DNA of 64,000 nt from Epithemia pelagica (GCA_946965045.2 OX337239.1:2914001-2978000), one strand, 5' to 3'; counted from the first letter of the stretch, positions 11,901 to 44,688 are shown. Notes: generated by a model from the sequence alone, not told the origin. Made by a program: numbers and translations.

Positions 11901-14900
11901 TGATCAAGACTGCTAACGAGTCTTCCCCAGCCGATCCTGCTGGAAAGGGAGTGCTTGACGCAGCCGTACTGTCACAACGTTGGGGCATTGGTTTACCCAA
12001 AGCGAAGAATACGCTTAAAGTGACGACGCAGGCTGGAGTACGAAACGTATTAATCCCATCTGAGCGTAAGGTCCGTAAGAAGGCACCGTGGCTCAAATTC
12101 CCTAATGTGAAAGGCCGTTGGTTCTCGGACGAGATGTTTGCCAAAGAAGTATCACTGAACGGGGACACAGGCGCCTCGATCTTTACCGACGGCAAAGGAT
12201 TCGACCACGTTTATCCCTGGAAGTCTAAAAAGCAACATCCTGAAGGATTGATGTCTTTGATTCACAATGTAGGGATTCCCCAAACAATGGTATCTGATGG
12301 TGCCCGAGAATTGTTCCTAGGGAAGTCCCGTGAAATATGCAACGAGTACCGCATAAAGATGGAGAAAACGGTTCCTTATAGTCCATGGCAGAACGCCGCC
12401 GAAGCGAGCATTCGTGAACTAAAGAAGGGAGTTGTCAAAATTATGAGGACGACCGGCGCACCACGACGTTTATGGAGCTATGCTCTTAAATGGTGCTCAC
12501 ACGTACGGCAACTCACGGCATCCGATATCCCTGAATTAGATGGACGGACACCGTTCGAGCATGTAATTGGCTCAACGCCAGACATCTCTCCATTAGCCAT
12601 GTTCCAATTCTATCAGCCGGTGTATTATCGCATGACCATGGCACAGTTTCCCTTCGAAAAAAGACTGATTGGCCGATGGTTGGGCTTAGCCGATGATTAC
12701 ACCGATGATATGGCCTATGAAATCCTAACGCAAGAGGGCAATCATGTCACATGGAAAGATGTGTGGGCCATTCCGGAAGACGACCTGAAGAATCCGACGA
12801 TTCATCAGCAGTTGTTGGACTATGATACCGCTATTCAAACGCAAATGAAAGAGCCGCCATCTGATGGCACAACTGGGAGCGATCCACCCCCAGACCTCTT
12901 TGACGAAGGTGAACTTCTAGAGCCCTTGTTCCCAGAGGCCGAAGCCCTGGAATCCGACGCGTACACGCCGGAGGAACTAGACGAATACCTCACCGCTGAA
13001 GTCATGCTGCCGCGAGGAGGTGAAAGCGCTCGAGCGAAAATCATTGGACGCACGAAAGATGCTCATGGGCGACCTATTGGTGAGCGCGACGCAAACCCAA
13101 TCCTTGATACCCGGTACTACGATGTACAGTTTCCGGATGGATCGGTCGAGTCGTATGCAACCAATATGATCGCAGAGAATCTGTATTCGCAAGTTGACCC
13201 GGAGGGCAATGCGTTCAACACATTGAAAGCCATTGTGGGTCACCGCAGTGATGAGACCGCAGTTAAGCGAACAGACGCATCGTTCCTTGACGGCACATCA
13301 CACCACACAACGAAAGGCTGGGAATTGCAATGTGAACTGTCCGATCAATCAACTGTTTGGCTGCCGCTCAAAGACGTCAAGAATGGAAATATGATTGAAG
13401 CCGCCGAATACGCAGTATCCACTGGCATCGCAAAAGAGCCTGCTTTCGCATGGTGGGTGTCACGTGCACTTCGCAAACGAGACCGCATTATCAAAAAGGT
13501 AAAGTCACGTTATTGGAAGCGAACGCACAAGTATGGCATTGAGTTGCCCCACTCTGTGGAAGAAGCCCTGGCGATTGACCGCCGAACGGGGACTGACTTC
13601 TGGCGTAAGGCTATTGAGAAAGAAATGAAGAACGTTGGCATTGCTTTCGAATTTCCAGCTGATGGCGAAGTGCCTTCTGGATACAAGCATATTCCCTGTC
13701 ATATGGTTTTTGATATCAAATCAGACCTGCGACGAAAAGCACGGTAAGTGGCCGGAGGCCACAAAACTGATCCACCCAAAGAATCGACCTATTCTAGTGT
13801 GGTATCACGCGATAGCGTACGCATTGCTTTTACTATCGCTGCACTAAATGGTCTAGATGTTCTCGTCGGGGACGTGCAAAACGCATATCTCAACGCACCG
13901 ACTAAAGAGAAGACCTATACCACCGCGGGACTCGAATTTGGACCAGATAAGGTTGGACAACCTGCACTGATAGTGCGCGCATTATATGGTCTCAAAAGTT
14001 CTGCCGCAAGGTGGCGTGATCACATCGCCGCAACGCTCCGCGATATGGGATTTAAGATGTGTCAAGCTGATCCGGATGTATGGCTTTGAGCGAACACTCG
14101 ACCATCTGATGGGTTCCAGTATTACGAGTATGTTTTGGTCTATATTGATGATCTGCTGATTGTTAGTCATGATCCCAAAACCGTGATGCAGGATCTGCAG
14201 AGGCGCTATACGATCAAGCCCGACAGTATCAAACCGCCAGACGAATACTTGGGATCCGAAATACGGCGTTATACCATACCCGACACGCAAGATCCGTCGA
14301 ACCGTGATCGTTGGGCCATGTCCGCTGACAAGTATTGTAAGCGTGCTCTTGCCGAAGTCGAAACGGAACTGGAGAAATCCGGAGAAAAGCTGAAGTCAAA
14401 AGTGACGACGCCGATCGCCGATGGATATCGCCCGGAATTGGATGCGACTCCTGAACTCGACGCAAGACGTGCGAACTATAACCAAGGACTGATCGGTATT
14501 CTCCGTTGGATTGTTGAACTCGGTCGTATCGACATTACAACCGCAGTCTCCCATATGTCCCGTTTTATGGCGAATCCACGAGAAGGACATCTCGAGCAAA
14601 CGTTGCACATCTTCGCATATCTGAAGAAGTACGATAAATCCGCCATTGTGTTCGACGACACAACCCCTGACTTCGATGAGTCACGTTTTACCCGACCGGA
14701 TTGGTCTGAGTATTATCCTGATGCTGCCGAGCCGATTCCGCCAAACGCACCAGCACCGCGTGGAAACGCTGTCACCACGACTTGCTTTGTCGATGCTGAT
14801 CATGCTGGATGTCGTGTCACACGGCGCTCTCAAACAGGAGTCCTACTGTTCTTGCAACAAGCACCGATCATGTGGTATTCAAAACGACAAAACACTGTTG

Positions 14901-15235
14901 AGACGTCTACATTTGGCAGTGAGTTCGTGGCGATGAAAACTGCCATTGAAATGATTGAAGCATTTCGTTATAAGCTGCGAATGATGGGTATCCCGTTGGA
15001 TGGAGAGACGAATGTGTTTTGCGACAATGAATCTGTGTTCAAGAACTCGACGCAGCCGGAATCAGTCCTAAAGAAGAAGCACAACGCAATTGCTTATCAT
15101 CGGACTCGTGAAGCGCAAGCTGCTGGACTTGTGCGCATTGCATGGGAAGAAGGTGAAACGAATCTTGCCGATATCCTAACCAAACTGCTACCCGGACCTC
15201 GATTGCGATTCCTGGCCCAACGTATCATGTGGTAG
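8921..15235 (+). pseudogene. gag-pol: Copia gag-pol polyprotein with five in-frame stops and no frameshift
   Basis: ORFs 8921, 10277, 11006, 11738, 13748 and 14135 are all in the same frame. Stops at 10058, 10997, 11723, 13745 and 14087. Motifs: ELDSHADTC (PR), WFSDEMF/SDGARE/PWQNAAE (INT), CHMVFDIK, YIDDLL (RT), VDADHAG (RH). Confidence 0.93.
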
Positions 15236-15359
15236 CAGACCCCTTTTTAGATCCAAAATGGGATCGCCCCTTTTGAAGAATAGTCCGACGTACTGGACTG
15301 GCCTCTGCTGATATGACGAACTAAACGAAGTTGCCCACCCCGATTTTGTTCGCGGGGAC

Positions 15360-15599
15360 TGAATAAATAATCACGGGCGCCCCCTTTGTAACCTACGAAG
15401 GGCCTCGCCATGCCTCGCTACGCACCGCCTGGCATCGCCCGGCCCCTAGTTATGTGTTCGCTAGTGGGTACCGTGGTCGCTATTTGGCCCCTACGTGAGC
15501 GATTTGCCCCCAAAGGGCACCCCTACTTTAGTTATCATAATTTCTGATAGTTTGATTGTTGCAAGCCGTATATTGCGTCTGGCCGTCAGTTTTTATTCA
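15360..15599 (+). repeat. 3' LTR (240 bp)
   Basis: Near-identical to 8185-8424; preceded by the PPT CGCGGGGAC at 15351-15359. Confidence 0.95.
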
Positions 15600-16495
15600 A
15601 TTCGTCGCCGTATTCCCGGAATACAACAACGAGGACCCAGATGCGCAATACTACACCCTCTACCTGCGCAAGACCCCTGACACACACTTGCTCACCACCA
15701 ACACCATCCGACAGTTCACCGACTTCCCGAACAACATCCTTCTCCCCACCCTGGCGGCCGTGGCCGCGACACCTCCGAGACAATCGACAAACAACCACAA
15801 ACCAGCAACTCCGACTTCTTCTAGCCACACCAACCGACTCGTAGCATTTACCAACCGTCTTCTCAGGCGAAAACACAACAACCTCGACGAAACACCAGCC
15901 GAGACAGAGGACAACGGACCCGAGACTCCGGACAGGCACAACCATCCAAGCAACCAGCCAAACAAACGGAGTGCAGCCGCCATGCAACCAACAGAGGAAG
16001 AGGACAACGACCCATACGACGACGGCACAGATTGGACAACAGTGGCAGCGACAGCCCACCACATCCAAAACCAAAACAATGAGGTCGACGACCAAAAACC
16101 AGCAGCCAAACGGAACCAATTCGCCCCGTTGGCCGAACAACAAGACGACCAAACAGCTAACGACGACATGATGGACACGGAAGAGTCCGACGACCACTCG
16201 CGTGCCCTCATTGGAAGCGACGACAACGGAGATAACTACGAACAAGACGACCATGAGTTTTCAGCCACCACCATGCAAGAAATCGAACTAATCTTCAAAT
16301 ATGTGGCAAACAACAATCCCTCACGCATCGACGAAATGCGCGAATTTCTAGAGAATACAAAGTCGTTCACGAACGACACCGACGCGCAGGATGCTTGGCG
16401 CTTTGCCCAGTCTTTAGTCCAGACCGGCAACACCTACATCGCCGACTCGCGCACCGGCCATGTGGTCCCGCATGACAAATGGGCCAAAGGGCCAA

Positions 16496-19400
16496 ATGAG
16501 TGAACGAAAGACAAAAACTCCCCGACACTGTCCAGTACCCGACTGCCCATGGACGGTGCCATCATCATCAACCAACCCCCATGCCTCCCTGAAGGAACAC
16601 CTAATCACCGAGCACAACGAAACTCACCCAACAGACTACCTCACACCCAAATACTGCAACCAACACGGCTTTCATCCATGCCCCAAATGCGACACGCCCA
16701 CAGCCATCTTCACTACGGAAGGGCATCTAAGACAACACGTAACAAAAAAACATAGTAGGACGAAAACAAACCTCCAGTTAGTCCTACAAACCTACCGACA
16801 TTCTCAACCAGAAAATGAGAGACAATGGAAAGATAGCTTAGCTTATCTGCACAAACTGCAGCTTTCACCACCACCATTCCGCCGAAGTATCTGGCACAAA
16901 CTAAAGCCTCCAATCAGAGCAGAATTTTACACAACATACAACACGGTTGTGTCTTGGATCCTTGAAGCAACACCACCCCTGTCCCCCTCGGTCCTGAAGG
17001 ATGACAGACCACCACAACACGACATCGACGCCAGTCCCTTTTGGAAATTGTTAATTCTATTAGAGTCCCTCCTGCTGGCACCAATCAAAGGAACAGTGCA
17101 CCTCACCCATGCAAACGCCTTTCAGGCCCGGCTCTCCTGGTTTAAGACCGGCAGACTCGAAGAGCTCCACAACATGATCTGGAATCTAACTCCACTCCCG
17201 AAACAGGGAGCAATCAACAAGAAAAAACAGAAACAACGACATCAACAACAACATCACCCCTCTCAGTCCGACCAACTGCCACAATGGCGTATCAACTCAG
17301 CTCAACAATTAGCCGACCTTGGCAATTACCGAGCAGCAGTCAAACGACTCACAACAAACACACCACCAGCAACATTGACAGCACCAAGAGTCAAACATTG
17401 CCAGGACGAACTCTTCCCACAAAGACAACGACCACCCCCGTCAACAAGATCACATGGTCAAACAACAATGGGACCCCCAGCCGCGCAGTACTTGAAGCTA
17501 ACAGACGAGTCCTTCGAAAGAGCACTGCGGCAGATGACACCGGGGACGGCCTCGGGACCGTTCTCAACATGCATCGACACAATAGTGTCGATGGCCCTCC
17601 ACAAGACAACAAAAGCGCCGGATGCAACAAGACCGTACTTCCACAACATCAAGTCACTCATACAACTCGTTGTGACTGCCCAAGTACCGACAACAATCCA
17701 ACCAATTCTCGCAAGCAATTACTTTCTTGCTCTGCACAAAGACATGAACAATCTGGAACGGTTAGGGCCAATTGGGATTGGAACAGCCATCAGAAGAGTA
17801 GCGGCCAAGACAGCCCTGGTTCACCTTACCGACGCCAATCAACCCCTCATGCTCCAAGGAGGCCAGTACGGCATACAAGTGCCCGGGGGAGTCGACTTTG
17901 TCGCACAAACCACGGTCATGGCAGTGCGGCAATACATCAACCGAAATCCAACAACGACAGACCCATCAACAACATCAACACCAACCGACAGCCAGACGAG
18001 ACCTCCAAGCTAAGCACTGGTCATGCTGGATCTAACAAATATGTTCAATAATGTGAGCAGAACCGAAGCAAGAAAAATCTTGTTAGAGCACGAAGAAACA
18101 ACACCACTGGTCCCCTTGTTTGACCTGTTAACACAACACACCTGCAAACAATGGAACTTCGACGAAAACAAACAAGCACAGTTTTTACGGCAAGAAGAAG
18201 GGTTCCCACAGGGCTGCCCTTTGAGCCCGCTATTCTCCTGTCTCGTCTTACTGGCCTTAACAAACAAGCTGAACAAAGAACAAGCCAAAAGAGCACAACA
18301 ACAACAGCGCAACAACAACCCACACGACGACGAAATGGGCGGAATAGGACACACCGCATCCATCATGGATGACACATCAGTGTGTTTGACCCACTGCGAC
18401 GTCCCATGGTTCCTAAGACGTTTCGAAGCACTCGGTCAGCCTTTGGGAATCATTTTGAACAAAAACAAAACAACAATTCTTACCTCCACTGACGGTACAT
18501 CCCCAGACACTCTAGACCCAACCGACAAACAGTGCCTCGAACAAGCGCTGTCGTTCCTTTCTCCAAGAGACCCGGCAAAAGCCGAGATCACAAACGGCGT
18601 ACGATTTCTCGGACAGCCTATAGGCTACAGCAAATTCGCCCAACAATACATCCAAAACAAAGTGAAAAAGATGCACCACAAACTAGACTGTTTCTTGCAA
18701 CTGCCTGACCTCCAAACCAAACACAACCTTTTCAAATTCACTATGGTATCGTCCCTGTTGCACCTGCTACCATCAGACGTCAACCTGGCACACACAACAA
18801 CAAATCCAAGAACGACGCTTTGGTCAAGCCCAACAACATTAGAGACAGAAAAAATCGTTACACGTTTTCTCTCAGAACTCACCTCGCTCCCCGAAACAGA
18901 GATCAGCACTTCGGCTTGCCTCATTGCGGCAATGCCACAACGACTCGGAGGCCTCGGCTACCAACAAGCGGCCACATCGGCGTACCCAAGATTGCTAACC
19001 CAAACGGCACAAGCAATCGCCTTAGCAACCTCAAGAGAAACACCAATCCCGAAAGTCCACCAAAGGGAACTTATCAATTGGCAAGAAAGCACCGATGAGT
19101 ATCTGACAATTTCCGAAAAACACTTTCACTATACGCCAATGAACACGCAGAAGAGCAATTGTACACACCAACGAGGTATGACCATACCACTCACAACAGA
19201 CTTCTCCATCACACAGTCCACGAGCACACCCTACCGCGATTGGTAGCCGAAACCACACCAGAACAACGAACCTTCCTCCCCGGTTTATTGTCGCCTCTCA
19301 CCAGTTTGGCACTGTCTCTTCCCTTGACAGCAACACAATTTCGCTATCCAAACAAAGTATTCCAAACGGCAATCAAAAGAAAATTGCGGCTCCCCCTGTT

Positions 19401-20388
19401 CGTGAATGATCCAACACAGTCTTGGCCACAGAAATGCCGCTGCTCGAAGAGCAAGGCAATTGACCCTCTGGGAGACCATTTGTTCTCATGCACCTCCGCT
19501 TCGAAAACAGCCCTTTCAAATGCAATTCGAGATACCTTATTCGATGTACTAAGACAACTCGCACCAGCAGCTGGAACAGTCGAAACCACCCACAACGTCC
19601 ACGTTGAGCCACCTGGTTTGGCTCCGCAACACGAGCGAAACATACGGCCCGCCGATGTTGGGATGCTCCTCCGAAAGCCACACCACAACAACCACTTTCA
19701 ATATGTGGCAATAGACATCACAATTCCCCCACCTCAGCAACCTTTGCCAATCAACGACCCGTCCGACCACAAAACAATAGCCACAATGGCATCTAGGGCG
19801 CATCAGGAGGCAGCAAGGGCTAAGTTCTGTCGGGATCCACAAACAGCCACACACCTGCTCCACAACGGAGTTTATCTCTTACCATTCACCGTCGACCACC
19901 TTGGTTCCTTGGGATCCTTCGCCGATACCCTTCTATTCCCATCAGAATATCGCAACCAAACCTTATCAACAACCGAACCCCCGCCATGGAATAACCCCTT
20001 TTTTGGAAAAGACGAAAAGCGAAGCAAATCACATCCCGCGGCATACGCACTCTTGCAACAACTGAAAGAAGCGCCAAACAACCTGCTTACCAAGGCAAAC
20101 AAAAACACAAAAAAGTTTAGCTATCCAGAAGCAAACATATACACAATCGGACACTTTGCAAAAGCCTCATTGGGACATGCAATAGTATCGGCACTGGCCA
20201 ACCATGCCAACAATAACATCACAGCGATCCAACATCACCAATCCAATCGAAAAACTCGAATCACACAATTGCAAAATCTGGCAACACCATGTTTTGCACC
20301 AGTCACTCCGATCTACTCCCCGGCTCCAATGGCACAGTTCATCACTGCCACGGACACAGCCCCACTCCTTTGCGAACTCGCCGCTTAG
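16496..20388 (+). pseudogene. ORF2 of the CRE-like element: C2H2 fingers, reverse transcriptase, CCHC and restriction-like endonuclease
   Basis: CPVPDC...HLITEH and CPKC...HVTKKH fingers; RT motifs GPIGIGTAIRR, LDLTNMFN, GFPQGCPLSP, SIMDD, FLGQPIG; C-terminus CRC...DHLFSC, RPADVG, IDITI. One in-frame stop at 18011 and a frameshift near 19100-19160. The ATG at 16496 overlaps the ORF1 stop. Confidence 0.85.
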
Positions 20389-20468
20389 GAGTCCCACTTT
20401 ACCATAGACAATAACATACTAAAAAGACTAAAGGTATATGACAACATCGAGACCCAATCGTCCAGTTA

Positions 20469-21490
20469 TGGGCTATCGGTGGGCGTGATAGCGCAAACAA
20501 ACCCCTGCTCGATTTGGCTCGTTTTTGTTGGAACGAGATTTTCAACCGTAACTCGATGTACTGCCGAAGCTCCAATATGGTAGTTCTACAGTTCATACTT
20601 GAAGGGCTTTTACTTTAGCGTCTACCTTCGTGAAACCAACTATCATAACTATCGTAGGTGCCATGGTTATCGCAACATAGTCGTCCATCGATGAGGATTT
20701 TCATCTCTCGCGACACGAACCACAATCGATCCTCATCGTCAGTTTCCGCTACTCGTCTCATTCAATCTTGATTCTCTGCCCCTCCTTTTTTGTAGCATTT
20801 TAGTTTAGGAACACTTGAGCGTAACGAGGTATCAGATTGACCGTAGGCGCCATGGTCATTGAGAATGGGCCATCCATTGATGGAGGCATTTTTCTCGATG
20901 TAGCACGTAGCACACAACATTTCGAGACCGAAGGACGTTGCTACTCGTCTCGTTCAATATTGACTCGCTTGCCTTCCTACTTTGTAGCATTTTAGTTTAG
21001 AACCTACTTGAGCGTACCCAAGTCTCAGATTGACCGTAGGCGCCATGGTCATTGAGAATGGGCCATCCATTGATGGAGGCATTTTTCTCGATGTAGCACG
21101 TAGCACACAACATTTCGAGACCGAAGGACGTTGCTACTCGTCTCGTTCAATATTGACTCGCTTGCCTTCCTACTTTGTAGCATTTTTAGTTTAGAACCTA
21201 CTTGAGCGTACCCAAGTCTCAGATTGACCGTAGGCGCCATGGTCATTGAGAATGGGCCATCCATTGATGGAGGCATTTTTCTCGATGTAGCACGTAGCAC
21301 ACAACATTTCGAGACCGAAGGACGTTGCTACTCGTCTCGTTCAAAATGGACTCATTGCCCCTCCTACTTTGTAGCATTTTAGTTTAGGACCTACCTGAGT
21401 GTACCCAGGTCTCAGATTGACCGTAGGCGCCATGGTCATTGAGAATGGGCCATCCATTGATGGAGGCATTTTTCTCGATGTAGCACAAAG
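20469..21490 (+). repeat. Left TIR including ~3.8 copies of a 193-bp tandem unit
   Basis: Starts TGGGCTATCGGTGGGCGTGATAGC; CATGGTCATTGAGAATGGGC recurs at 20851, 21044, 21238 and 21431. Confidence 0.9.
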
Positions 21491-21642
21491 CACACGAGAT
21501 TGGGCAAGCTTCAAATCAATTTTTAAGTGTCGTCTGAAGATGTCGGAGACAGGGGACGATTGAGACGAGAAATGGAAGTGGGGAGGTCATGGATTACAAC
21601 AACAGACGAAAGTCTATCACGCAAGCATAAACTTATAGTTTT

Positions 21643-24404
21643 TTATTTTAGAAGAAGTGCGCCACGAACTTTCTTTGGAGATTTATAGTGGACATGCTGA
21701 CTGTGCCGGAAATATTTTGCGAGACGATCTTCTGAGTTGTAGTAGGGTGGTAACTGGTACTCGTTTTTGGGAAGATATGGATGAATGGTTTGATCACGCC
21801 CTTGATACATGTAGAAATGGGCACGTGGATTGCCTTGGGCACTGGTCAAGAAGCCTCCGGCGTGAACAGTATCGCCTCGCATCATGAGGAACGTTCCATA
21901 GGGAACGTCGACCACCTCACCCAACTGATGCCTATTCTTCTTGTGGTCCTTGCGGTGCCGCCACAATTCTAAAGTCATTCCGTCCTCCGTCAGGGGCACA
22001 AAAACAGCAAATGGGACACGTTCTCGGAACGGCACTTTCTTTCGTCCCTTTCCACGAGTCTTGACGTTGCCTTGGGGTGTCCCTTTCTGTTCAGTCGAAC
22101 CCTGTTCCTCGTCCGGACTTGGCGTGACCACATCCCATTTGAAATCCAGATGTGGCTCTTGCACCTTTTCAAATGTGGTCTTGAGGAGCGACAGGTGGAT
22201 CTGGATACCTTCAGCAAAGGAGTCATCCTCTGCGTACTCCATGTCCACAAGGCCTTGAGCAAGAGTCTTCTTGAACGTTGCCACAATTTCAGCTACCCGC
22301 TTCTTCCCCCAGGGTGTGAATTCGTCATGTGCCACTAATCCTTCACCGTCAAACATGCGCATTTGGATTTGTGGGGTGTATTGTTGCACACCCCGCATTC
22401 TCTTCGAAATCTTGTCGTCCCCATGCTTCTCCGTTCCGAGAGACCAGAAAGCTCTGTCGGAGCGACCAAAAAACGTCCTCGTGGATCACCCTCATAATTG
22501 ATCAACAAGTGGCCATAGTTTTTATTCAGTTCTTTTGCTTTCTCTGCCGGATTTGGTTCCTCCTCAACCGCTTCCACCTGGTGAGAGTCCTCCGGACTGG
22601 GGTTTTGATTGAGTATCGGGGCGTCATATGGAATGCTTGGTTGTGGCTGAACCTGCCCGTATCCTTCATAAGGGAGCTGCCCCTGAGCCACCAAGACATG
22701 GGGCCGATGATGCTCATCATAGAAATGCCCGGGCGTGTAGTGGGAATGTGGAGGATGATGGTATGGTGGACTGTGGTACTGAGGATGATGGTGTGGTTGA
22801 AGGTGGTGTATTTGCGGAGAATTGTAGTGGTGCTGTTGAGTGGCAACATCATGAGGAACAGCAGCGGCGGGAACAGGATGGTGCAGTTGAAGGTCGTGCG
22901 GTTGGTAGTGCTGTTGAATGGCAACATCAGGAGCAGCAGCGGCGGGAACAGGATGGTGCAGTTGAAGGTCGTGCGGTTGGTAGTGCTGTTGAGTGGCAAC
23001 ATCATGAGGAACAGCAGCAGCGGGAACAGGATGGTGCAGTTAAAGGTCGTGCGGTTGGTAGTGCTGTTGAATGGCAGCATCAGGAGCAGCAGCGGCGGGA
23101 ACAGGATGGTGCAGTTGAAGGTCGTGCGGTTGGTAGTGCTGTTGAATGGCAACATCAGGAGCAGGAGCATTACCACCAGAACCACCCATCTTCATCTTCT
23201 TCACCTTCTTCGGAGAATCATCCTGGCTGGATCGACCTCGCTTCTTCTGCACATCCTCATCAGGCTCCTCACCGCCTTCCTTTGAGGCTGCGATCGTCTT
23301 GGTGTCCGAGCTAAGGTTGTAGAATAAAAACAGCTCGTCCCCCTCCGCGATCTCCTTGATCACACGAACTAGCAGATTCTTGTCGATACGCACGTTGTAG
23401 TCCTTGTGTGCTTCGTCAGGTCCTTCTTCTGTATCGTAGAGGTGATACTGGGGATCATTCATCAAATGAAACCCCATGAAAAAGAAATCCTCGTTGTCGG
23501 CTTGAACGATGCGTTCTCCGTGCTCTCCAAACTGAATTGCGTACTCGGTCCGACCGACGGTCCGAGAGGTGATATCCAACCCTGCATACACACCAATCAC
23601 CTCACCTACTTTGTGCTCTTGTACAGAAAAAAGACCAAACCCGGGGCCTTCTTTTCCCTCTTCAGCCTTGAGGCCCGACTTCTTGACTGTGAAGATGTGT
23701 TTTGTCCCCAGCATAATCTTGAAGATCGGATCATTCTTGAGGGAGAAGCTGAACTGTCGAAACTTGAGGCACGAGTTGTTTCGAGTTTGCTTGGTTGGGA
23801 TCCCAATCCCAACGGACTTGGGCACAACTTCCCCAACTTCCAGTCCGTAGTCATTTTTCTTGGGGGCCGTATTAGAGTTCTTGATGCCTGTGCCTGATTT
23901 GCGAATGGGCGCATCTGTCACCGAAAATGTGACGCCAATCTTCTTTGCCACAAACACTCCGTATGCGTTGATCAGCACAGTGCCATCCTTGATCGAAGTG
24001 GACAGAAACTTCAGTCCTCGGATGAAATTGTCCCATGGATCCCGTCCATAGGCCTTGACTTTCTTTACTGCAGCGACAGCCTCCGCATAATCCTTTTTCC
24101 GTTGCTCGCTGAGGCGCTGTTTCAAAGCCGACGCCGAGTCCGTGTATGCATTGTCGTCCTTTAGCTTGCCGCGACGACTGTCTGCATGCTTTTTCTCGTT
24201 GACTTTATGGAGGTCTTCGTCTGTAAGAAACCGATGGCTTGCTCTCGCTTCTTCTGTTGCTGCCATTGTTGCTTCGTCTGCTGCTGCCATAGGTGATGGT
24301 GAATGTGGCTCCGACTCCGCCTCCGAGGCAGCAACTGCAACATGAGCAAGCGCCTTAAGACGCGATTCAGATTGACTTTGTGTTTTCATTGTTCTCCTCT
24401 CCAT
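21643..24404 (-). pseudogene. SET-domain plus His/Gln repeat linker plus 2OG-Fe(II) dioxygenase fusion gene (~920 codons; one nonsense codon, one homopolymer frameshift)
   Basis: SET motifs GFGLF...GEVIGVYAG...FHLMND...IAEGDELFLFYN (~23316-23665). DSBH motifs PHLDF...FAVFVPL...RGDTVHAGG...GNPRAH (~21800-22160). ORFs 23040..24404 and 22335..22694 are in the same frame, separated by a CAA>TAA change in one repeat copy. One extra base in the A6 run at 22468-22473 joins the oxygenase frame. Confidence 0.75.
22830..23163. repeat. Coding tandem repeat, alternating 75/78-bp units (~4.4 copies)
   Basis: GGGAACAGG at 22869, 22944, 23022 and 23097; the minus strand encodes QQHYQPHDLQLHHPVPAAAAPDVAI-like units. 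Confidence 0.9.
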
Positions 24405-24842
24405 CTTTTTGTAGAGTAGGGGTTTCTCAGAGAGTCTTGGGTTTTCGAGCGTTTCTCAGACAGAGAGCGTTCGTCATTGCCTGGTCTGCAGACCACTTGA
24501 CAAAAAAACAAATCAGACCACACTTGGAAAAAATCTTTCGATTCAACGGGAATACGGTTAAAACGTCAAATTTTGTTACATATTTCATTATGTTTAGAAC
24601 ATTCTTGTCGTTTAATGAAGGCGGGCGGGCATGCGGAACACGCGCTTTTGTAGCGACTGCTCCACAAAAACTACATCTTCCCTCCAACACCGTTCCACAG
24701 TTCATTCAACAATCAACCATGTGCTTGCTTGCAAGTCGAAAAGATGCTTTTGACCGCTAATGGAGATTGGACACACAAACAGCAATTCTCAATAACCTCT
24801 TAGAAACTTGAGAAGACCAAAACGCACGAGAACGATACAGCA

Positions 24843-27800
24843 ATGGAACCACCGCCGCCGAGGCCTAAGTCATGTGGTTTGGGGATTGGATCGAGATGTT
24901 TCATGAGGCGTGGAGACATCCCATGCATTATTGTTGAAGCAGTCGAATTTCATAAGTGGATGGTCGCTGGAGTGGACGAAAGAGGAAATCTAACAGAGCT
25001 AAGAAATGAACGCTCTTCCCCACAGCTTCGATTCCCCAAGAAAGATGAAGGTTTTCCTGGACAACCAGATCCAGTTGCAGCAACCGGACCTCGACCTACG
25101 ATCTCAACAACAACCACAGTATCAAATACTCCAGTTCCAGCCAAAACCGCAGCAAGGACAATGACAACGGCATCGAGGACAGCAACATCCACGTCAATGC
25201 CAACGGCAACCACGACAACGACAACGAGCGCGACAACAAGCGCGACAACGAGCGCGACAACGAGCGCAACGAGCGCGACAACGAGCGCAACAACGACAAC
25301 GAACACCCCAGTCGAGACGACAGCAAGGCCGACGGCAGCGGCATCGACAGCAGGAACAACCACACCAATGCAATCGGTAATGACAACGACTGCTGCACCA
25401 ACGACCACGGCAACGACCACTGCAACAACCACTGCAACGACCGCAGCAACGACAACGACTTCAGAGGCTCCTCGCACTGTTGGTGGAGTGATATCAACAG
25501 ATGTAAGCGACGATGAAGAAATTGAAGTTTTGGCACAAGCGGCGATCCTGGACAACGCTCAAGGTCAAGATGCACCTCCGAACAATCAGAACAACCCACC
25601 AACGACCAGGCAAAATGATGATGAAGATAGTGACAACGAACATGAAGATCAGGATGAAGATGCAGCTGCCGATGAAGAACTCGAAGAAGATGTACCCGTG
25701 GAACTTGTCTATGATGACGAGGATGACAGAGCTGAACAAGAACAAGCACAAGCACGCCAATTGGCTTTCGGGGCTTTGGTTGAAAGAGACGAAGATTGTC
25801 ACAGGCATAAAAATGGAGCAATACAAGCTTACCAAAGACCATCTTATTGAAAGCAACTGGACCGTAGTCGTCAAGCCTCCCAAGAAAAAAGGAATCGACA
25901 TTGGAGATCGAGTTCACAAGAATGGCAACAATGCTCAATGGGGAACAGTTGTCGACGGGAAGAAGAATCCAGTGGCAAAAGGAAACCTATGGACTGTGCT
26001 TTTTGACGGAGAGAGTGAGCCAACGACCGATTTAACGGGTCAACAGCTACGAAGGAAAGAGGACAAAAGAAGATTTGAGTGGAAGATAGTCGAGGATTCA
26101 TCGCCGGATCATCCAGTGTCGGACTATGAGAAGAATGCAATCGTTGGCTACAACTTCGGCAAAAGGATGAGTAAAAGTGAAATAAGCCACGAGAATGAAA
26201 AATACTCCTTTCCATTTCTTGACTTGTTGATGCACTTCTGGCCAGGTAAGTCAGCACTACTCTTTGTTTCTACATCGCAGAAGTTCAACAGTCTCACTTT
26301 CTTGCAATCGGCCTCTGTACAGGGAACTGGCAAAATCAGTTGAGAGTCCTTAATCTTAGTTTAGATCGATTGAATCAAAAGCGTGATAAAAAGAAGAAAA
26401 TTCGAATGGTTACGGAAGGCGAGTGGTGGAAAGTTTGGGGGATTATTGTCGCGGCAAGTCCCCTTGGTGTAGGAGGAAAGGCTCTTTTCCAGGATCCTAG
26501 CACTCGTCGGTTATCACCACATGTAAATCTTGGAACGAAAGGCGAAAACATCATGACAGAGAGTAGGTTCAACGACATTAAGACGCATCTCTATCATGCC
26601 TTCAGGGGGACGGATCCGAATGACAAATGGAATGAAATCCGTCCCCTGACTGATGGGTTCAATGAGAACCGCCGACTAATAATTGCGTCGTCCGTGGTTC
26701 AAGTGCTTGACGAGTCGATGAGTGCGTTTCGACCACGAACGACCAAGCAATCTTTGTTGCCGCATATCTCATTTATTGCCCGCAAGCCCAAACCTCTTGG
26801 GACGGAGTTCAAGGTAAGCTAACACCAGACAGACAATGTTTTGAAGACTTAATGTGTCTGACCTTACTACCTTATTTCATTCACAGGTGGTCGCCGACAC
26901 CACGACAGGGTGTCTGACCCAACTTGAAATCCAAGAAGGAAGAGTCCCAATGCGGCGTAAGAAGTTTATCGCGAAGTCTGGTCCATCGGGCGGCTGCACA
27001 CTGCGGCTTGTCGAAGGTTCACAATACAGTGGACAGCTGTCAAGCGCACGCCACGAAGCTGGAAAGGCCTCCAAGCGCTACCTGTATTTAGGCGACTCCT
27101 GGTTTGGAAGTGTCCAGGTCGCTGAATGCCTCAAGTGTTCGTGGAGGGAACAGGACGATCGACGCAATCGCACTTCCTTTCCGTTCTACGTGGACAAAGA
27201 GAAAGGGCTGAACACGGATGGACATGAGTTCATTGGTGCTGTGAAGACAGCGCACTCATGGTTTCCCAAGAAACAGATCGAGAAGCAGATGAAGTCTTTT
27301 CCATCCGGAGCCTACCTTGTCATGGAGTGTACTGCCCCTGTCACTGGAGTGAAGCTCGTAGCGGTTGGGTACAAGTACAATACAAGGAAGGTTCTTCTCT
27401 TTGTCATGACCAAAGATGCCGGGCATACTCAACCGGGCGCACCATACATTGCTCGCTTCACAGATGTGTTTGGAAATATCAAGCAGCGGAGAGTCGAGCG
27501 TCCCGACTGTATTTCAAAATACTTTCGGCACGCCAATGCAATTGACCGGCACAATCACATCCGTCAGGGTCTTCTACGCCTCGAAGAACTATGGTTAACT
27601 AAAAATCCGTGGTTTCGGATTGTGACGACAGTCTTCGGTATGACGGTGGTTGATTGTTATCTTGCACTGCGTTTTCACATGCAAGTGGAACCTTTCCTGA
27701 ATACCTCAATCCACGACTTTGCGGATATTCTGGCTTATGACTTAATCAACAATCCATATTCCAAACGCAGTTCAGTTGAACGAAGAGCGGGTGTGCTTGA

Positions 27801-28200
27801 AAGCTTGCCAGTGACAAACAACCTTTCGGTGTGTACGGATGCCTCCGTAACTGTGCCATCCAGTGTTGGCCATACCTGTTCAAGCAGTATATCACCCGCG
27901 TCCGTATTTTCTGAGCTTACAATTGATTCGGTCGTTTGTCACAGCGTTGTTGAACAGGACAACGTTTCTTCATCAGACCAAAGAGGCATGAAGCGTAAAT
28001 GTGTTATTTGTAAGAATGACACGCGAACCATGTGTGGCCATCCACAATGCCGCATGTTCACCAAGACTTGGCGCTCAATAACCTACGTGGGAACACCAGT
28101 GTGCAAACCATCTGTGAGCATTCGATATGGGAAACAATGAACTTGTATCGAGCAGCACGCCATGAACTTTGCTGCGGCGAAAGGAGGAAATGCGACTTAA
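24843..28200 (+). pseudogene. piggyBac-like DDD transposase with a long N-terminal extension, two introns and a Cys-rich C-terminus
   Basis: Introns 26246-26322 and 26814-26886 (GTAAG...CAG) give continuous ...HFWPGNWQNQL... and ...GTEFK-VVAD.... Catalytic-like motifs VLDESM, GDSWFGSV, AIDRHN; C-terminal CVIC...CGHPQC...C..H. There is a +1 frameshift in the A5 run at 25809-25813 and a TGA at 28138 before TCIEQH. Confidence 0.82.
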
Positions 28201-28315
28201 TGAAACTTCTGTGTGCACAAGAACTACACTCATTCTACATGTTTGCGCCTCTCTACATATTATGAAATTAGGAAACCACCATGAATAAGAATACTAACTA
28301 TCATTTGTTACCCGC

Positions 28316-28888
28316 TTACGTGATTTTAACACTTTCCTGGTTGGGCCACGTCTCCGTTGCTTTGTCATAGAGCGACATGAATGCATTCATCCCAGTAAGA
28401 CTCATTCGCACAGTAATGATCATGGGTCCCATTGTCACCTTGGTATCCAAGGAGTGAGAGGTCTCAATGGTGAGTTCTCCTTTGACAAGGGACCCATTTT
28501 TGGAACGGAACTTCTTGGAGCGAATTTTGTTGTGAACCGATCCGACTGGGATGACGATGTCAGGCATCGAATCGTCCTTCTTGTCACGGCCAAACGCGCA
28601 AATTGATAGCATTCCACCGTTGGTACCATACCTGGAGCGCTGTAAAAGAATCACGCCTCGATCCACAACAAGTGTCCCCTTTTCTCCTTTCTCCCCGAGA
28701 GTGGCGTCTTGAAGGTGTACGTTCACGACCGCTTCACCGTAGATGGTTAAGCGGCTTCCTTGGAGCTCGATGTTGCTCCCCGTATCTTGTACGAGGTGAA
28801 AGCCGTTAGGAAGGAGAATCCGATTGCGCGATTCATTCTCGTGTTCGGACATTGTACTTCGATCCGTCCTAAGCATAGAGAGAATCAA
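28316..28888 (-). CDS. Hypothetical protein (190 aa), cargo inside the TIR element
   Basis: Uninterrupted ORF of globular, beta-rich composition; no motif recognised. Confidence 0.5.
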   Translation of the reverse strand: MILSMLRTDRSTMSEHENESRNRILLPNGFHLVQDTGSNIELQGSRLTIYGEAVVNVHLQDATLGEKGEKGTLVVDRGVILLQRSRYGTNGGMLSICAFGRDKKDDSMPDIVIPVGSVHNKIRSKKFRSKNGSLVKGELTIETSHSLDTKVTMGPMIITVRMSLTGMNAFMSLYDKATETWPNQESVKIT

Positions 28889-29354
28889 TGAGTCAAGGTT
28901 ATTGCCACCATTGTAAGCAATGATTTAGATGCCGCGGAACCACTTACTTCTACGCTCGTTTTGATTTGCAAACAAAAGCTCTTTCCTCAGGTGAGCACTT
29001 CATTCAGGTGGCCTATCGATTCTCTCCTCTCCTTCGGAAAAGCTCTTACGTCGTAAAATCGATTTCTCAGACGACATGTAGTAAACTTCATTTGATTTGG
29101 GGGAACGGTTGGGGACTTCCTACTATTGCCACTCGGGAGCAATTACGAAAGTGTGACAAGTTACTTAAGAAAATTTTCTTCCGTTGAGCGTTGAGCCGCA
29201 AGCCGGCTTCCCATACGAGATCCGATTTTATGGTGAGACGTCACATCAATCAAACATCAACGAGAGACAGAGCCGACAGCGACCTTCATAAAACGGCGTC
29301 AACGAGAAACACATCAAGAACAACTGCAACTACAACAACAAAAGCAACAACACA

Positions 29355-29753
29355 ATGTCACTCTATATCGACAAGCGCCGTGTTAGTGCGCGCCTTCAAA
29401 ACCGCACACACACAAGTGTTGTTCGAACCAGTGTGTCAAAATCTGCCGTGCGCCCAACTGAACAAGGTGCCCTCAAGAAAACCAAAATCAAGGCAGAGAC
29501 AGCAACCATTGGAAAGGCAGAATTGCTCTCGGAAGGATTGGATCAAGAATGTGGGGACAAAACCGTAGTTGTTCTTGGAACCGTTGAAGAATCAATCACC
29601 AAGATTCGCGACAATTTAGAGGAAGAAGGATTGAATGGTGGAGACAAGACTCCAGTACGCCACCTGAAAATCAAGTTTGCCGACGACCTTAGCCCAGTCA
29701 ACGAGGAGATCGAAAAGCCTGCATCACGTTTCTCAATAAATCTCGATGCGTAG
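29355..29753 (+). CDS. Hypothetical protein (132 aa), cargo inside the TIR element
   Basis: ATG-initiated ORF preceded by a CAA-rich leader; no motif recognised. Confidence 0.4.
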   Translation: MSLYIDKRRVSARLQNRTHTSVVRTSVSKSAVRPTEQGALKKTKIKAETATIGKAELLSEGLDQECGDKTVVVLGTVEESITKIRDNLEEEGLNGGDKTPVRHLKIKFADDLSPVNEEIEKPASRFSINLDA

Positions 29754-30023
29754 TGCTCAGACTGTATCCTCCCGTGGAACTGCTGTTGATAGCGATCTTT
29801 CTTTCGACTTTGCCGAGACCCAACAAGATGACTGCGAGATTCTTTACGACAACTACATGCAGTCCTAAACAACGTTGAACTAGATATAAATCAAAATAGC
29901 ATTGACTATTCTTCAACTTCCTTGAATCATCACTCAGAAGTCATAGAAACTTACGGATTCAAAGGGCAAACTACCAAATGGAAACACCACTTCCGTTGAT
30001 GGTCGCTACTAGGATAATAAACA

Positions 30024-30796
30024 CCATGGCACCTACGGTCAATCTGATACCTGGGTACTCTCAAGTAGGTCCTAAACTAAAATGCTACAAAGTAGGAGGG
30101 GCAGCGAGTCCATATGGAACGAGACGAGTAGCAACGTCCTTCGGTCTCGAAATGTTGTGTGCTACGTGCTACATCGGGAAAAATGCCTCCATCAATGGAT
30201 GGCACCTTCTCAATGACCATGGCACCTACGGTCAATCTGATACCTGGGTACTCTCAAGTAGGTTCTAAACTAAAATGCTACAAAGTAGGAAGGCAAGCGA
30301 AACAATATGGAACGAGACGAGTAGCAATGTCCTTCGGTCTCGAAATGTTGTGTGCTACGTGCTACATCGAGAAAAATGCCTCCATCAATGGATGGCCCAT
30401 TCTCAATGACCATGGCGCCTACGGTCAATCTGATACCTCGTTACGCTCAAGTAGGTCCTAAACTAAAATGCTACAAAAAAGGAGGGGCAGAGAATCAAGA
30501 TTGAACGAGACGAGTAGCGAAACTGACGATGAGGATCGATTGTGGTTCGTGTCGCGAGAGATGAAAATCCTCATCGATGGACGACTATTTTGCGATAACC
30601 ATGGCACCTACGATAGTTATGATAGTTGGTTTCACGAAGGTAGACCCTAAAGTAAAAGCCCTTCAAGTATGAACTGTAGAACTACCATATTGGAGCTTCG
30701 GCAGTACATCGAGTTACGGATGAAAATCTCGTTCCAACAAAAACGAGCCAAATTGAGCAGGGGTTTGTTTGCGCTATCACGCCCACCGATAGCCCA
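30024..30796 (-). repeat. Right TIR including ~2.8 copies of the 193-bp unit
   Basis: CATGGC(A/G)CCTACGGTCAATC at 30025, 30218 and 30411; ends ...CACCGATAGCCCA. Confidence 0.9.
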
Positions 30797-31693
30797 TATG
30801 ACCTGAAAGTGCTCTTTCTTACACTACGATAGACATATCGTAGGCACCATTTGATGGTAGGGCACGTAGTGGTCGACTTATAGTACCATCAATGTAGCGG
30901 CCAAAGGGCAATCTAGCGGCCATTACGTGGACAAAAAAAAATGACCCTACAATGGTGAGTTAGAACTCGATAACCATGGCCGCTATAGCAAAAGTGGTCC
31001 GCAGGGGCCGAGAGCTTTGTTTGAAGAAGACGTCGCTCGATATTGGGGCATGGGCGTCCTATATTGAGTGAGTTACGCTAGATGTCCATCATGGTCATTT
31101 GGCCGCTATTTTCGAGGTTTTGGCCGCCTCACCCGGCGCGGCACTACAGTAGCGCCGCCACCACTGCGTGAGTACGAGACCGTTCTGCCTCATTCATCTC
31201 AATGACATCTCAATGAACAAAGTAAGGTCTCAGTTATCGTCTCTCATGCTTTTAGAGAGTGCAAGAACAATGTCATCCATACCATCCAATAACTTAGATG
31301 ATGAAGCTATGAGGTCCTCTGGATGTGTTGTCATAGACAATGCTCGCTCCTAGTTGCTGGCTGTCTAGGGTTAGGGTTATTGCTTCGCCGTACAAAACCA
31401 CGGAGAGATTTTAGACCCTGTTTTAGACATTTTATACAGTCTACGAGTACTTTTAGATTTATTTTAGACCCGAAATATTTTAGACTGTCTAAACGGTCAC
31501 CCTGAATCGTCCCCTATCTCTAGCCGCGGGTTGACTCCCTATCTCACTCCCATCATTGTTTCACTTTGAGATCATTCAGTCTCCTGAAACTCACTGGGCG
31601 TAGAGCTGACTGGGCTTGAATCTGAAGGCTCTTTGGGCCGATCAGTACGAACTGTGTCTGCGATCCTCTAAAAGTCATATTTAAGTCCGAACG

Positions 31694-35612: not shown

Positions 35613-36315
35613 AGTCGTTTGTTTGCAACGTTGTCACCTCCTGAGGGTATCTCTTTTTTCAGAAACGGAGACTTGTCTTTTCCATCTGAGGGGGTAATAA
35701 GGTACCCCCAATGCACCCCCCATTTGTACATAAAATGCACCCCAATTGTACATAAAATGCCCCCCAGTTCATACATATAATTTACCCCAATGGGCGCGTT
35801 AATTATCCGAAAGTTGGCACATTTTCATTTCATAATAGGGGTACATTGCCATCCATTTGATACCACCGGTATGTACATTTTCCATGAATGAAACCAGAAC
35901 ACAAATGGACATGAACAGTCAATGCTGAACATACCCAGGCACATCATGTTCACATTATACAAACAACAACATGAGCATTCCACCGTCATAGTATAAACCA
36001 CACATGGACATTCCCCTGACATGATATTAACAACACATGTGCTTTCACTTGGTCATTCTATTTTCAATTCATGGGCATCATCACTGCATACTAGGACTTG
36101 TCATACGGGCATTTTGGCAATCATGTTATACTTCATTCTGACATAAAACCTCTACCTAAATTGGCACTAATACTGTTTGCACTTGCACATCGTCATCCCC
36201 ATCCACAGACTCCTCATCTTCAGTCTCCTCACATAGATAAAACTTCCGCTTCCGTTGCACAGTACTACCACCCTTTCTTTTATTACCATAGTTCATCACT
36301 CTGCAATACTCTGTA

Positions 36316-38041
36316 TTGAGAAATCTTCAAAACTCATTGTCTACCTCTTTCTTCCTGTCTTCAACAACATCGTTTTGTAGTTGTTCATACCTGTTCAACC
36401 CTCTTGCATCCATCTTTCTGTTTCTACCCATTCTTCCGGAATATGTATATTTATCCACTTGCTCACTTACTAGTTCGTTCTCAATATCCATTTCACCATA
36501 CCAGACAGGGTCTAATGCCTTGATTGACCATTTCAACTGAAGGGTTGCCTCTGATGTCCACACATCCCAATTGTCCTCAAGAATTGTTAACATGAATGCC
36601 TCGTCGCTTGGTGTAATTTTCTTTGCTGCCTTCTTCCACCATCTCTTCTATTCATCTTCTGGTATATTTTCGTCTGATGGGTCGAAATCAAAAACTTCCG
36701 TCGTCACTGACTCTCCGCAGACAGCTGGAGCAAACACCAAGATCATGTATGCATAAGCTCTATTATTACAATCATCTCCTCTCATTTCCAACATCTCACC
36801 CAACGAAGGCATTTTACCATACTATCTTTGTAAAACCTCCTTATATCCTTCTTGACTTGGGCTATAGAAGATGAAGAGACGCAAGTAAGCCAAGAAGAAG
36901 AACACAATGGCAGTCTGATGGGGGTCGAGTCTTACCCTTAAAAGCTCTTGCGAATGTGGCAAGTACATTCGACCTTTTCACTCCCAAATATCTTTTCACG
37001 TGAGGAACATGTTCAACCCACCATGTCTCTTTCATATTTTTGTTAGTGAGACCGTTCCTTCGAAAATATTCCTTGAAGTAAGTCTTTGCAAGTTTGTACA
37101 ACCCTTTTTCATCTGGTATGTTATCCTTGTCACTCAATTATTTGCAAACCCTAAAACAAGTCCTGGTAGCAAACCATTTGAAGGAAGTTGTTTCAGAAAC
37201 TGGCATGTCACCAGATGCAGATGAGTCTTTTCTTACCTTTTGAGATTCTGATGTCGAATGTGTCACAGCTGTAAAATGGCTCCGATTGGAAAATCCACCT
37301 GTGGTAAAGGACATATCCGAAAGTGAAGAAACATCATGAGCGACATGTCCACCTGTTCCCATCATATCACCCACATGCATTAGCTGCCGATGGCTTCAAT
37401 GTCAACCTTTCTTCAAAGGAATTTCATTACAACTTACTAACCTCAGCGCCAACTGGTTGTGCTATATCAGACATACTCTGTTGATTTGTGTCTGTTGAGT
37501 ACATTAGAGGGACAAGTATGTGAATATGATCCATGTGACGATTGTCAAAAATGATAGATTACACACCATTGTCTCTGGTGGGGTTCCTTTGGGACATTGT
37601 TGTTGGCTGTGTTCTCAAACCTGTAGTGTCTGTTCTGTCTCTCATATCATCAGTCACCGTGGAGTCTCCTAACCTGTCATCTCTCATATTATCATTCATC
37701 GTGGAGTCTCCAAACAGAGGTCTGGATGGACTGTCATGTGAACCCTGCTCCACCAATCTATCAATATCTCCATATGCAGTTTCTTGTACGTTTCCAACAT
37801 TAGTACTTTGCCCAGATAATGAAAGACGATTGTTAGCCTGATTTCCGACTTGGTTTTCCTTATCTTGAGCCTGCCGTCTCTCCCGGTTCTGTTGGCGTTG
37901 CCTGGCCTCTCTCTCTTGTTTCTCTATATCTTTTTCGTGTCTGTCTCTGTATGCTGTGTTGCGGTCACTCATTGCCTTTTGACGGGCATTGCTTCCTCGA
38001 TCCACCTGTATGCGTCTACCGGTCGTTGCCATTTTGTCCAC
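36316..38041 (-). pseudogene. Multi-exon companion gene of a Plavaka/CACTA-related element
   Basis: ITPSDEAFMLTILEDNWDVW...KYTYSG...GLNRYEQLQNDVVEDR resembles the second gene of diatom Plavaka-type elements (recalled, not searched). GTAAG donor near 36935. Confidence 0.55.
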
Positions 38042-38299
38042 ACTTCTTTCAGTTTATGGGTAACCTGAGCACTGTTCCAAATCAATGTACTAGAAAGAAA
38101 CAACGAGTCCTGGTTCCAGGTTTCAAAACACATCGTCTCGTTTGGTGCTTCAGACTCGGTTGGTATCATGGTTTGAAATTCTTTTACTTGCTTTGGTTGG
38201 AATCGTTCTGTATTTATTTCAGTTTGAAATTTTGCCAACAGCCGAGAAATCAGGTTTCCCGTTATAGACCTGCACGCTTGCAACGTGTTTTCTTGTCAG

Positions 38300-40037: not shown

Positions 40038-40099
<62 letters not shown>

Positions 40100-40933
40100 T
40101 TCAAGAAGGTGCCAAAAGTTAGTGCCGTCAAACAAAGTGGTTCCAATAGTAGCAGCAAAATCAGTGTTCCATCGAATATCAAACTACCACATGGAGCGGT
40201 TGTTTTTGAAGAAGGTTCCGGCAGCAACGAAACTTTGTCGCAAAATCTTCGTAATGAAGATCATACAGAAGATGCGAGTAATAAGAGAGATGTCATTGAA
40301 GTTGAGTATGTGGGTAAAACTTCTCTTGATATGAATTTCCCAGCATTCGCAAAAGAATTCTTGCAGAGACACTTAGAAAGTGTGAGAGCCCATCTGGAGA
40401 TAGAAGCCGAACTTGGTACCATACGGTCTCATCCAAATTATCAGAGTGATGGTCCGTGGAGGGATTGGGTCTTAGCAAAAGTTCCAAAGGAAGGTCGTTA
40501 ACCCTTTAGAAGCAATTATGAAATGACAAATTCCCTCTGCCAAGTCATTTGTTTCCTCTGTTTACCTGAGCCGAGCAACACACAAATTAACAGTTCAACG
40601 AGAAATCAGATAACACACGCCATGGTACGAACTTGTGCAATAGGGACAGCAACAGACAAAAAGAGATCATCTGTTCTCTTCCATCGATGGAGGAAGAAAT
40701 ATAATGGGAGAACAAAGATTGCAGACGTGGCAATCATACCAGTCATGTCGATTCTTAAACCAGTACCGGTGATTAATGAAAACCCAGAATTGATTCTCCA
40801 ACAAGACCAAGTTCCAGTGTATTTACATTCGGGATTGGAACAGGAATTACTGGATGAAGACTGCCGTAACTTAAGGTCCAAGAAGAAGAAGTGTAGTGAT
40901 GTTGTTTGGGAGGTCAAAGAATATAAAAAGTGA
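38300..40933 (+). pseudogene. Plavaka (CACTA/EnSpm-related) transposase, N-terminally incomplete
   Basis: RNYHSQLRVL...IK(D)DAKSQDNLVGRY...CD, DAMHTLKTG, YPKTMFSAG...TANEWVG, GWKIPKYHNLTH...FG...ESNHKEIVKRNAKTVQKR; C-terminal HPNY...WRDWV and IPVMSILKP. Broken by a (TA)n tract and frameshifts. Confidence 0.75.
40045..40097. repeat. (TA)n microsatellite, ~26 units
   Basis: Direct reading. Confidence 0.95.
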
Positions 40934-42238: not shown

Positions 42239-42331
42239 GGGGAATGATGTTATTAGATGCTCATTCCATTTAATTCGAAGAACGGTATTGGGAAACAGAT
42301 ACGTTCAACAACATAAAACATATAATATATG

Positions 42332-44687: not shown

Positions 44688-44688
44688 G

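Follow-up and report, generated by a model that had tools for sequence, protein, structure and literature searches.

We analysed a 64-kb stretch of the Epithemia pelagica genome (GCA_946965045.2 OX337239.1:2914001-2978000; hereafter the window, to which coordinates without a locus label refer) and found that the region ending at position 31143 is a dead, left-truncated and multiply mutated copy of a real transposon. The element is very probably an autonomous cut-and-paste transposon of a divergent piggyBac clade that carries cargo genes, whose role we infer, and the window holds a defective copy of it. Intact relatives carry four genes, namely an intron-containing transposase, a divergently oriented cargo gene of 921 amino acids (aa), a 178-aa antisense gene and a 173-aa gene, and this whole four-gene unit has moved to at least five sites. 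The original prediction made from this DNA had proposed a cargo-bearing piggyBac-like family, and the proposal was borne out: four full copies flanked by target duplications contain the same genes, and diverged families appear to keep them under purifying selection. Independent insertions of the element thus enclose the accessory genes between their ends, and diverged families have conserved them.

The window transposase open reading frame (ORF) has a 98% identical relative, P0001. Exact-protein look-ups located five family-1 loci on separate contigs of the European Nucleotide Archive (ENA) assembly ERZ21939226 (L001, L003, L004, L006 and L005, the last being the window copy), with interiors about 98% identical to one another. 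Four of the five are full copies of 11.0-14.3 kb, each with TGCC...GGCA ends and a perfect 4-bp target duplication. The duplicated sequence is CTAG on both sides of L001 (1248-15566; 14,319 bp) and L004 (2795-14784; 11,990 bp), and ATAG on both sides of L003 (3379-15536; 12,158 bp) and L006 (3569-14589; 11,021 bp). The true tips, read from the sequence of these copies, are TGCCGCGCCGGGTGAGG...CCTCACCCGGCGCGGCA. Outside the 4-mers the flanks of the four copies are unrelated, and similarity stops exactly at the TGCC/GGCA tips.

Across six complete elements from this and more distant families, the 4-mers matching on both sides were CTAG four times and ATAG twice, and the single readable ends of L002 and L007 both have GGCA followed by CTAG. 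A 2-bp TA duplication with GTGCC tips was considered and ruled out, because the 4-mers begin with the same base at the two ends of each copy, and this base changes from copy to copy (C/C, A/A, C/C, A/A). Domesticated piggyBac enzymes of ciliates also make a 4-nt stagger centred on TA, so the change in this clade lies in the outer bases of the target.

The inverted-repeat pair that had been reported to enclose the genes is real: arms at 20467-21501 and 30023-30798 pair in foldback-like fashion, with 99% complementarity over a unique 280 nt and 91-96% over the repeated part. A 52-nt terminal probe occurred in two places only, one in each window arm, where none was expected by chance. Each complete arm is built of a tip of about 350 bp, a unique part of 280 bp and 2.6 to 13.8 tandem units of 193 bp. 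The left arm of the window retains its unique part (20467-20746) and an array of 3.9 units (20748-21495), and the inner right arm has an array of 2.6 units (30023-30518) followed by its unique part (30519-30798). Most of the difference in length between copies comes from these arrays, which reach 13.8 and 9.6 units in L001.

The outer limits of the element had to be redrawn. It had been described as a 10.3-kb unit bounded at 20469 and 30796, and these positions are not termini, as full copies are about 350 bp longer at each end. Similarity among copies continues for about 350 bp past 30796 in the window, and past both ends in the other copies. The right outer terminal module (30799-31143) ends in ...CCTCACCCGGCGCGGCA, with GGCA closing at 31143 and CTAC following at 31144-31147. 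At the left, the outer 353 bp are gone and the element starts 353 bp inside its tip; the lost piece was not found elsewhere in the window. The TTAT/ATAT flanks that had been read as TTAA-like are an artefact and cannot be a degenerate TTAA, since the copy is bounded on its left by a truncation; the sequence actually duplicated at the target is CTAG or ATAG.

The truncation has a counterpart. The window copy, broken at 20467, and L007 of family 3, broken at 1493, are independent left-truncated copies (n = 2) interrupted at the same homologous site about 353 bp from the tip. The break reads ...cagt before TATGGGCTATCGG in the window and ...gagt before AATATGTTATCGACC in L007, and both copies have full right ends, unrelated left flanks and no matching 4-bp duplication. 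A cryptic inner end or a fragile site is a possible explanation. In the window, retroelement sequence abuts the left break: an 11-kb run of plus-strand ORFs (8921-20388) lies directly to the left of it, with an RVT_1 match at 18023-19246 (E=2e-8) and a weak RVT_2 match at 14135-15235, and base composition is strongly skewed between 16 and 20 kb, with a GC skew of -0.25 to -0.31 and an AT skew reaching +0.38.

The transposase gene (24843-28200, plus strand) encodes about 1,060 aa when intact, comprising a long N-terminal extension, a core with three catalytic-like aspartates (DDD) and a C-terminal Cys-rich domain. In the window it is represented by plus-strand ORFs at 24843-25850, 25513-26343, 26340-26822 and 26854-28140. 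The call of a DDD transposase stood up well: DDE_Tnp_1_7 (PF13843) matched 26340-26822, in exon 2, with a Pfam E=1.9e-7, and the aspartates lie in DESMSAF, GDSWFGS and IDRHNH. A profile of the clade matched piggyBat (9c0f, E=1.1e-7) and Trichoplusia ni piggyBac (6x67, E=1.4e-3). In an alignment of ten diverged members, no change was seen in the DSWFGS and ID-HNH aspartates or in the C-terminal cysteines; in alignment A4 the invariant residues of the tail are C351, C354, C362, C367, C399 and H403, and the tail aligns to the Cys-rich domain of piggyBat. The third exon was not recognised by Pfam, and a phmmer search of it against the PDB gave nothing useful. Because of the Pfam and piggyBat/piggyBac profile matches and the invariant aspartates and Cys-rich tail, we place the transposase, judging by its sequence, in the piggyBac superfamily as a divergent member.

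A GT-AG intron of 73 nt (26814-26886) interrupts the transposase, and its splicing would join KPKPLGTEFK to VVADTTTG, two segments that are contiguous in the uninterrupted homologues P0013 and P0020. The diverged family L014, with 48% transposase identity, has an 85-nt intron at the same position. A first intron is probable at 26246-26322, with a GTAAGT donor at 26246 and candidate acceptors at 26280 or 26322. The N-terminal extension of about 470 aa (24843-26245) includes a Thr-rich/acidic low-complexity spacer and matched nothing significant in Pfam.

Head-to-head with the transposase lies the cargo gene (21643-24404, minus strand), which had been described as joining a SET domain to a 2-oxoglutarate (2OG)/Fe(II) oxygenase. 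That arrangement was upheld, with 438 bp between the divergent start codons (24405-24842, presumably a shared promoter) and both parts forming a single 921-aa gene in L001; in the window, however, the gene is broken into a SET-like ORF (23040-24404) and an oxygenase-like ORF (21643-22398), both on the minus strand, facing the transposase start at 24843. The N-terminal conserved module and the SET/PR-like domain occupy 23040-24404 and the dioxygenase domain 21646-22455. Between SET and oxygenase a coding tandem repeat of 75 bp (153 bp) at 22751-23168 forms a His/Pro/Gln-rich linker, which is absent from family 2.

The C-terminal part of the cargo protein is well supported, on a structural model, as a 2OG/Fe(II) dioxygenase fold (double-stranded beta-helix). 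The AlphaFold2 (AF2) model had a mean confidence (pLDDT) of 88 and a predicted template-modelling score (pTM) of 0.86, and Foldseek matched it with probability 1.0 and E about 1e-6 to the 2OG/Fe(II) oxygenases FtmOx1, OkaE and KanJ in the PDB, as well as to AndA and AusE. VIA-align gave Z 11-12 (11.9) over about 200 residues. Its Swiss-Prot neighbours were verruculogen synthase and prolyl 3-/4-hydroxylases, and its Atlas neighbours were PhyH-bearing giant-virus clusters; a phmmer search against the PDB returned nothing useful. An exhaustive HMMER search gave 217 homologues. Among 40 of these, Q151, H154, D156 and H250 never vary and R263 hardly does, which accords with the HxD...H iron triad; from its position R263 would be the basic residue for 2OG.

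The oxygenase domain has cellular kin, because on several metagenome contigs two relatives, P0074 and P0079, occupy a conserved gene neighbourhood free of transposases, with a selenophosphate-synthetase-like gene, a TPR gene, a WD40 gene and PGK. Neither the N-terminal module nor SET was present in any of 150 representative oxygenase relatives. We also observed cellular homologues of 436-463 aa (L009-L013), 36-39% identical, in conserved synteny on environmental eukaryotic contigs, next to an AIRS/Pyr_redox gene, a TPR gene, a WD40 gene and PGK. They may stand for the lineage from which the oxygenase domain was captured. Separately, in L002 two stretches of oxygenase coding sequence (aa 621-713 and 828-918) recur twice upstream of the gene, at 3286-3839 and 4533-5086, in a repeat of about 1.25 kb, and a second piggyBac-type transposase gene lies at L002 1-932.

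For the other half of the cargo protein, assignment to the SET family is probable. The Pfam SET profile matched along its full length (1-105) with 21.8 bits (E=2.6e-4), against a gathering score of 22.4. The HMMER check suggested in the original prediction recovered DDE_Tnp_1_7 and a weak SET match on 23040-24404. In family 3 the match on the N-terminal part had E=0.032. With Atlas this half had a features score of 0.92, and 94 of its 100 neighbours were SET (SET/PR) clusters. Motifs assigned by eye include GFGLF and DELFLFY, by which the GxG motif and the C-terminal Tyr would be kept. A metagenome scan with an alignment of the N-terminal module and SET detected no relatives; a word-based homologue search with cargo residues 1-420 also returned nothing, and it missed the cargo protein itself.

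Two further ORFs had been noted, and both were recovered, on the minus strand at 28316-28888 and on the plus strand at 29355-29753. The first is the antisense accessory gene, which encodes 178 aa from an ATG at 28852, is convergent with the transposase and is present in all six related families examined (for example L001 11367-11903, L008 11975-12430, L014 11533-12045 and L015 11967-12419). Its product is the best conserved protein of the element, with 76% identity between families 1 and 3 versus 63% for the transposase, and 42-49% in the distant families. It has no recognisable relatives or domains, and an Atlas search yielded no meaningful neighbours. The second (29355-29865) encodes 173 aa when intact and is conserved in families 1-3.

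We identified the lesions of the window copy by comparison with L001, which has continuous ORFs at 7916-9394, 9391-9873 and 9905-11251 and a cargo ORF of 921-926 aa. In the window a 1-nt insertion near 25809 splits the transposase N-terminus, and a stop codon at 28138-28140, ahead of the natural one at 28198-28200, removes the last 20 residues, including one Cys and one His of the Cys-rich tail. The cargo gene has a stop at 23040 and, relative to other copies, a 19-bp deletion at 22448, and the 173-aa ORF is interrupted near 29720-29757. L001 is the only copy in which the cargo ORF is intact.

We examined related families for the same genes by tblastn. In family 3 (L007), whose transposase is 63% identical, the N-terminal module plus SET is present at 54% identity and the oxygenase at 52%. 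Family 2 (L002, transposase 62% identical) has the N-terminal module and the oxygenase, with neither SET nor the repeat. The transposases of families 2 and 3 are 79% identical, making these families sisters, and for that reason we conclude that the ancestor shared by families 1-3 already had the SET domain and that family 2 later lost it. The cargo was absent from L008, L014 and L015. The distant cargo-less families, of 6.4-6.9 kb, have the CTAG duplication, TGCC tips and 178-aa antisense gene in common with family 1. L008 (7532-13935; 6,404 bp; 39-41% transposase identity) has 204-bp terminal inverted repeats (TIRs) ending TGCCTCG...CGAGGCA and CTAG on both sides, as does L015 (6890-13776; 6,887 bp; about 50% transposase identity) for the duplication. 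Inverted arms span 1-3.3 kb in family 1; those of the cargo-less families are about 0.2 kb long. L002 has no inverted repeats because its left end is rearranged, and the termini of L014 were too degraded to call.

Selection was estimated as the ratio of nonsynonymous to synonymous divergence (dN/dS; Nei-Gojobori) of family 1 against families 2 and 3, and the values are rough because synonymous divergence is near saturation. Within the cargo they were 0.20-0.36 (N-terminal module), 0.19 (SET) and 0.29-0.30 (oxygenase); the transposase gave 0.17-0.27, and the 178-aa and 173-aa genes gave 0.18-0.20 and 0.27-0.33, respectively. These ratios indicate that the accessory genes were under purifying selection while the three families diverged, with cargo values similar to those of the transposase.

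From these features a mechanism can be proposed. The transposase would bind the terminal module, and probably the repeat arrays as well, and would cut with the TA-centred 4-nt stagger of piggyBac enzymes. The SET-oxygenase protein would be expressed from the 438-bp promoter region shared with the transposase and would modify chromatin proteins at or near copies of the element, and the resulting change in chromatin would keep the element expressed or mobile despite silencing by the host. We suggest such a chromatin or anti-silencing role because of the types of domain present, their long retention and the precedents in other transposons; it is a serious candidate, if a somewhat doubtful one. 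The wider proposal, that the clade changed its target from TTAA to CTAG/ATAG and that one branch has long kept a SET-2OG protein acting on chromatin at its own copies against silencing, is put forward tentatively.

Several observations weigh against this account of the element. Every gene is intact only in L001, and the cargo-bearing families are known from one assembly only. A metagenome scan with alignment A4 found 80 transposase loci, none with cargo or small ORFs, which is weak evidence because most of the contigs were short (1-4 kb). All sequencing runs found to contain the element are sets of DNA contigs, in which no splice joints were seen. As to the cargo, the SET score falls just under the Pfam gathering cut-off, the SET NH position, again assigned by eye, reads MND, and the AF2 model of the N-terminal and SET half, built from 5 sequences, reached a pLDDT of just 33. 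The oxygenase had no JmjC or TET/JBP protein among its listed structural neighbours and no Pfam match, and its likeness is to small-molecule oxygenases and prolyl hydroxylases, a generic PhyH/P4H-like resemblance.

The same observations bear on the alternative that the element keeps an accessory protein that does not act on chromatin. Here the oxygenase would act on a non-histone protein or a small molecule, the SET/PR-like part would be an inactive binding module, and the benefit might lie, for example, in control of the transposase or of host factors for repair or stress. The PhyH-type small-molecule oxygenases and prolyl 3-/4-hydroxylases among the structural neighbours favour it, as do the altered NH motif, the MECOM PR domain as nearest solved relative of the SET part (E=0.19) and the cellular oxygenase homologues, which have neither SET nor any other chromatin domain. 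It has to contend, however, with the retention of the SET-type fusion in families 1 and 3 at a dN/dS of 0.19, with the preserved GxG motif and C-terminal Tyr, and with the SET and 2OG accessory genes of other transposons (PMC12730594; 10.1101/2025.02.11.637652). We regard this alternative as possible without favouring it, and a non-chromatin enzymatic role of the cargo is about as likely as a chromatin role.

The internal genes might instead be a chance recent capture, or a host locus lying between two repeats resembling miniature inverted-repeat transposable elements (MITEs), of no service to the element. The oxygenase must have been captured at some point, as it has cellular relatives in non-transposon synteny, and most copies are pseudogenised today. 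A chance capture predicts repeat-bounded copies that lack the genes, yet the same genes were present in all four of the full, duplication-bounded copies, no arms-only copies occurred among the loci retrieved, and three families with near-saturated synonymous divergence keep the genes at dN/dS 0.2-0.36; this explanation is very improbable. Copying by segmental duplication rather than transposition, which the finding of every copy within one assembly might suggest, is more improbable still, given that similarity ends exactly at the tips, that the flanks are unrelated and that each copy has its own identical 4-bp duplication. Both explanations are effectively excluded.

The transposon reading has consequences of several kinds. 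TTAA is regarded as the hallmark of piggyBac, and a clade using CTAG/ATAG offers natural material for studying how transposases read their target and could give transposon tools with another target site; if the reading is true, the clade would provide a naturally occurring piggyBac-like transposase whose target specificity is new and whose payload is at least 14 kb. With its four genes, the element brings piggyBac into the small group of DNA transposons known for long-term retention of accessory enzymes. The presence of a SET-like domain and a 2OG oxygenase in one protein makes element-encoded chromatin manipulation in diatoms directly testable, and, if true, would amount to an anti-silencing module complete in itself, a 'writer plus oxidiser'. 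The 178-aa antisense gene, which six families conserve, gives the clade a second component that has yet to be studied.

Two known systems are precedents for parts of this picture. VANDAL elements (MuDR) with VANC exemplify anti-silencing encoded by the element itself, and Teratorn, a piggyBac element fused to a herpesvirus, exemplifies very large piggyBac-borne cargo; VANDAL is also cited in PMC12730594. Their proteins are unrelated to those described here.

A literature search over full text, with Repbase outside its scope, turned up no description of such cargo in a piggyBac-type element, of a transposon with a SET-oxygenase fusion or of a piggyBac clade that targets CTAG. The claim that the architecture is new thus agrees with the absence of a description in that literature, but its novelty is narrower than had been claimed, because SET and 2OG accessory genes have already been described in other superfamilies (HarbingerS, MuDR, Helitron and Plavaka). 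SET accessory genes are cited from HarbingerS and MuDR elements of Phytophthora (Repbase Reports 2014, cited in PMC12730594). Like our element they are DNA transposons of stramenopiles that carry an accessory gene with a SET domain; as there described, they belong to other superfamilies and encode SET without a fused oxygenase, a distinction drawn from the description and not from sequence.

SET and 2OG accessory genes are reported from red-algal Plavaka elements and Helitrons (10.1101/2025.02.11.637652), and TET/JBP genes in fungal DNA transposons (PMC12730594). Our element resembles the Plavaka (CACTA-type) and Kyakuja-Dileera-Zisupton elements in its multi-gene cargo with a 2OG oxygenase, and red-algal Plavaka also in carrying a SET-containing gene (10.1101/2025.02.11.637652; PMC12730594). 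In those elements, however, the oxygenases are of TET/JBP type or separate genes, whereas here a single protein, encoded by a piggyBac-type element, has a PhyH/P4H-like fold fused to SET. The cargo showed no similarity to a Plavaka-like region at 35650-53790 of the window.

With foldback-type elements ours shares long inverted arms of tandem subrepeats, the number of which varies between copies and between arms; unlike them, it has a defined transposase, from a known superfamily, between its arms, and each tip consists of a unique module of about 350 bp. The remaining comparison is with piggyBac and piggyBat themselves, which have a homologous DDD transposase, a C-terminal Cys-rich domain, cut-and-paste movement and a 4-bp target duplication with central TA. 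A survey of 157 piggyBac-like elements found TTAA and TIRs of 12-19 bp as the rule and treated rare exceptions as mutations (PMC5381638). By contrast, our element targets CTAG/ATAG instead of TTAA, has TGCC...GGCA tips instead of CCC...GGG, bears arms of 1-3.3 kb with tandem subrepeats instead of 12-19-bp TIRs (PMC5381638), and has four genes instead of one, with a transposase of about 1,060 aa that contains introns.

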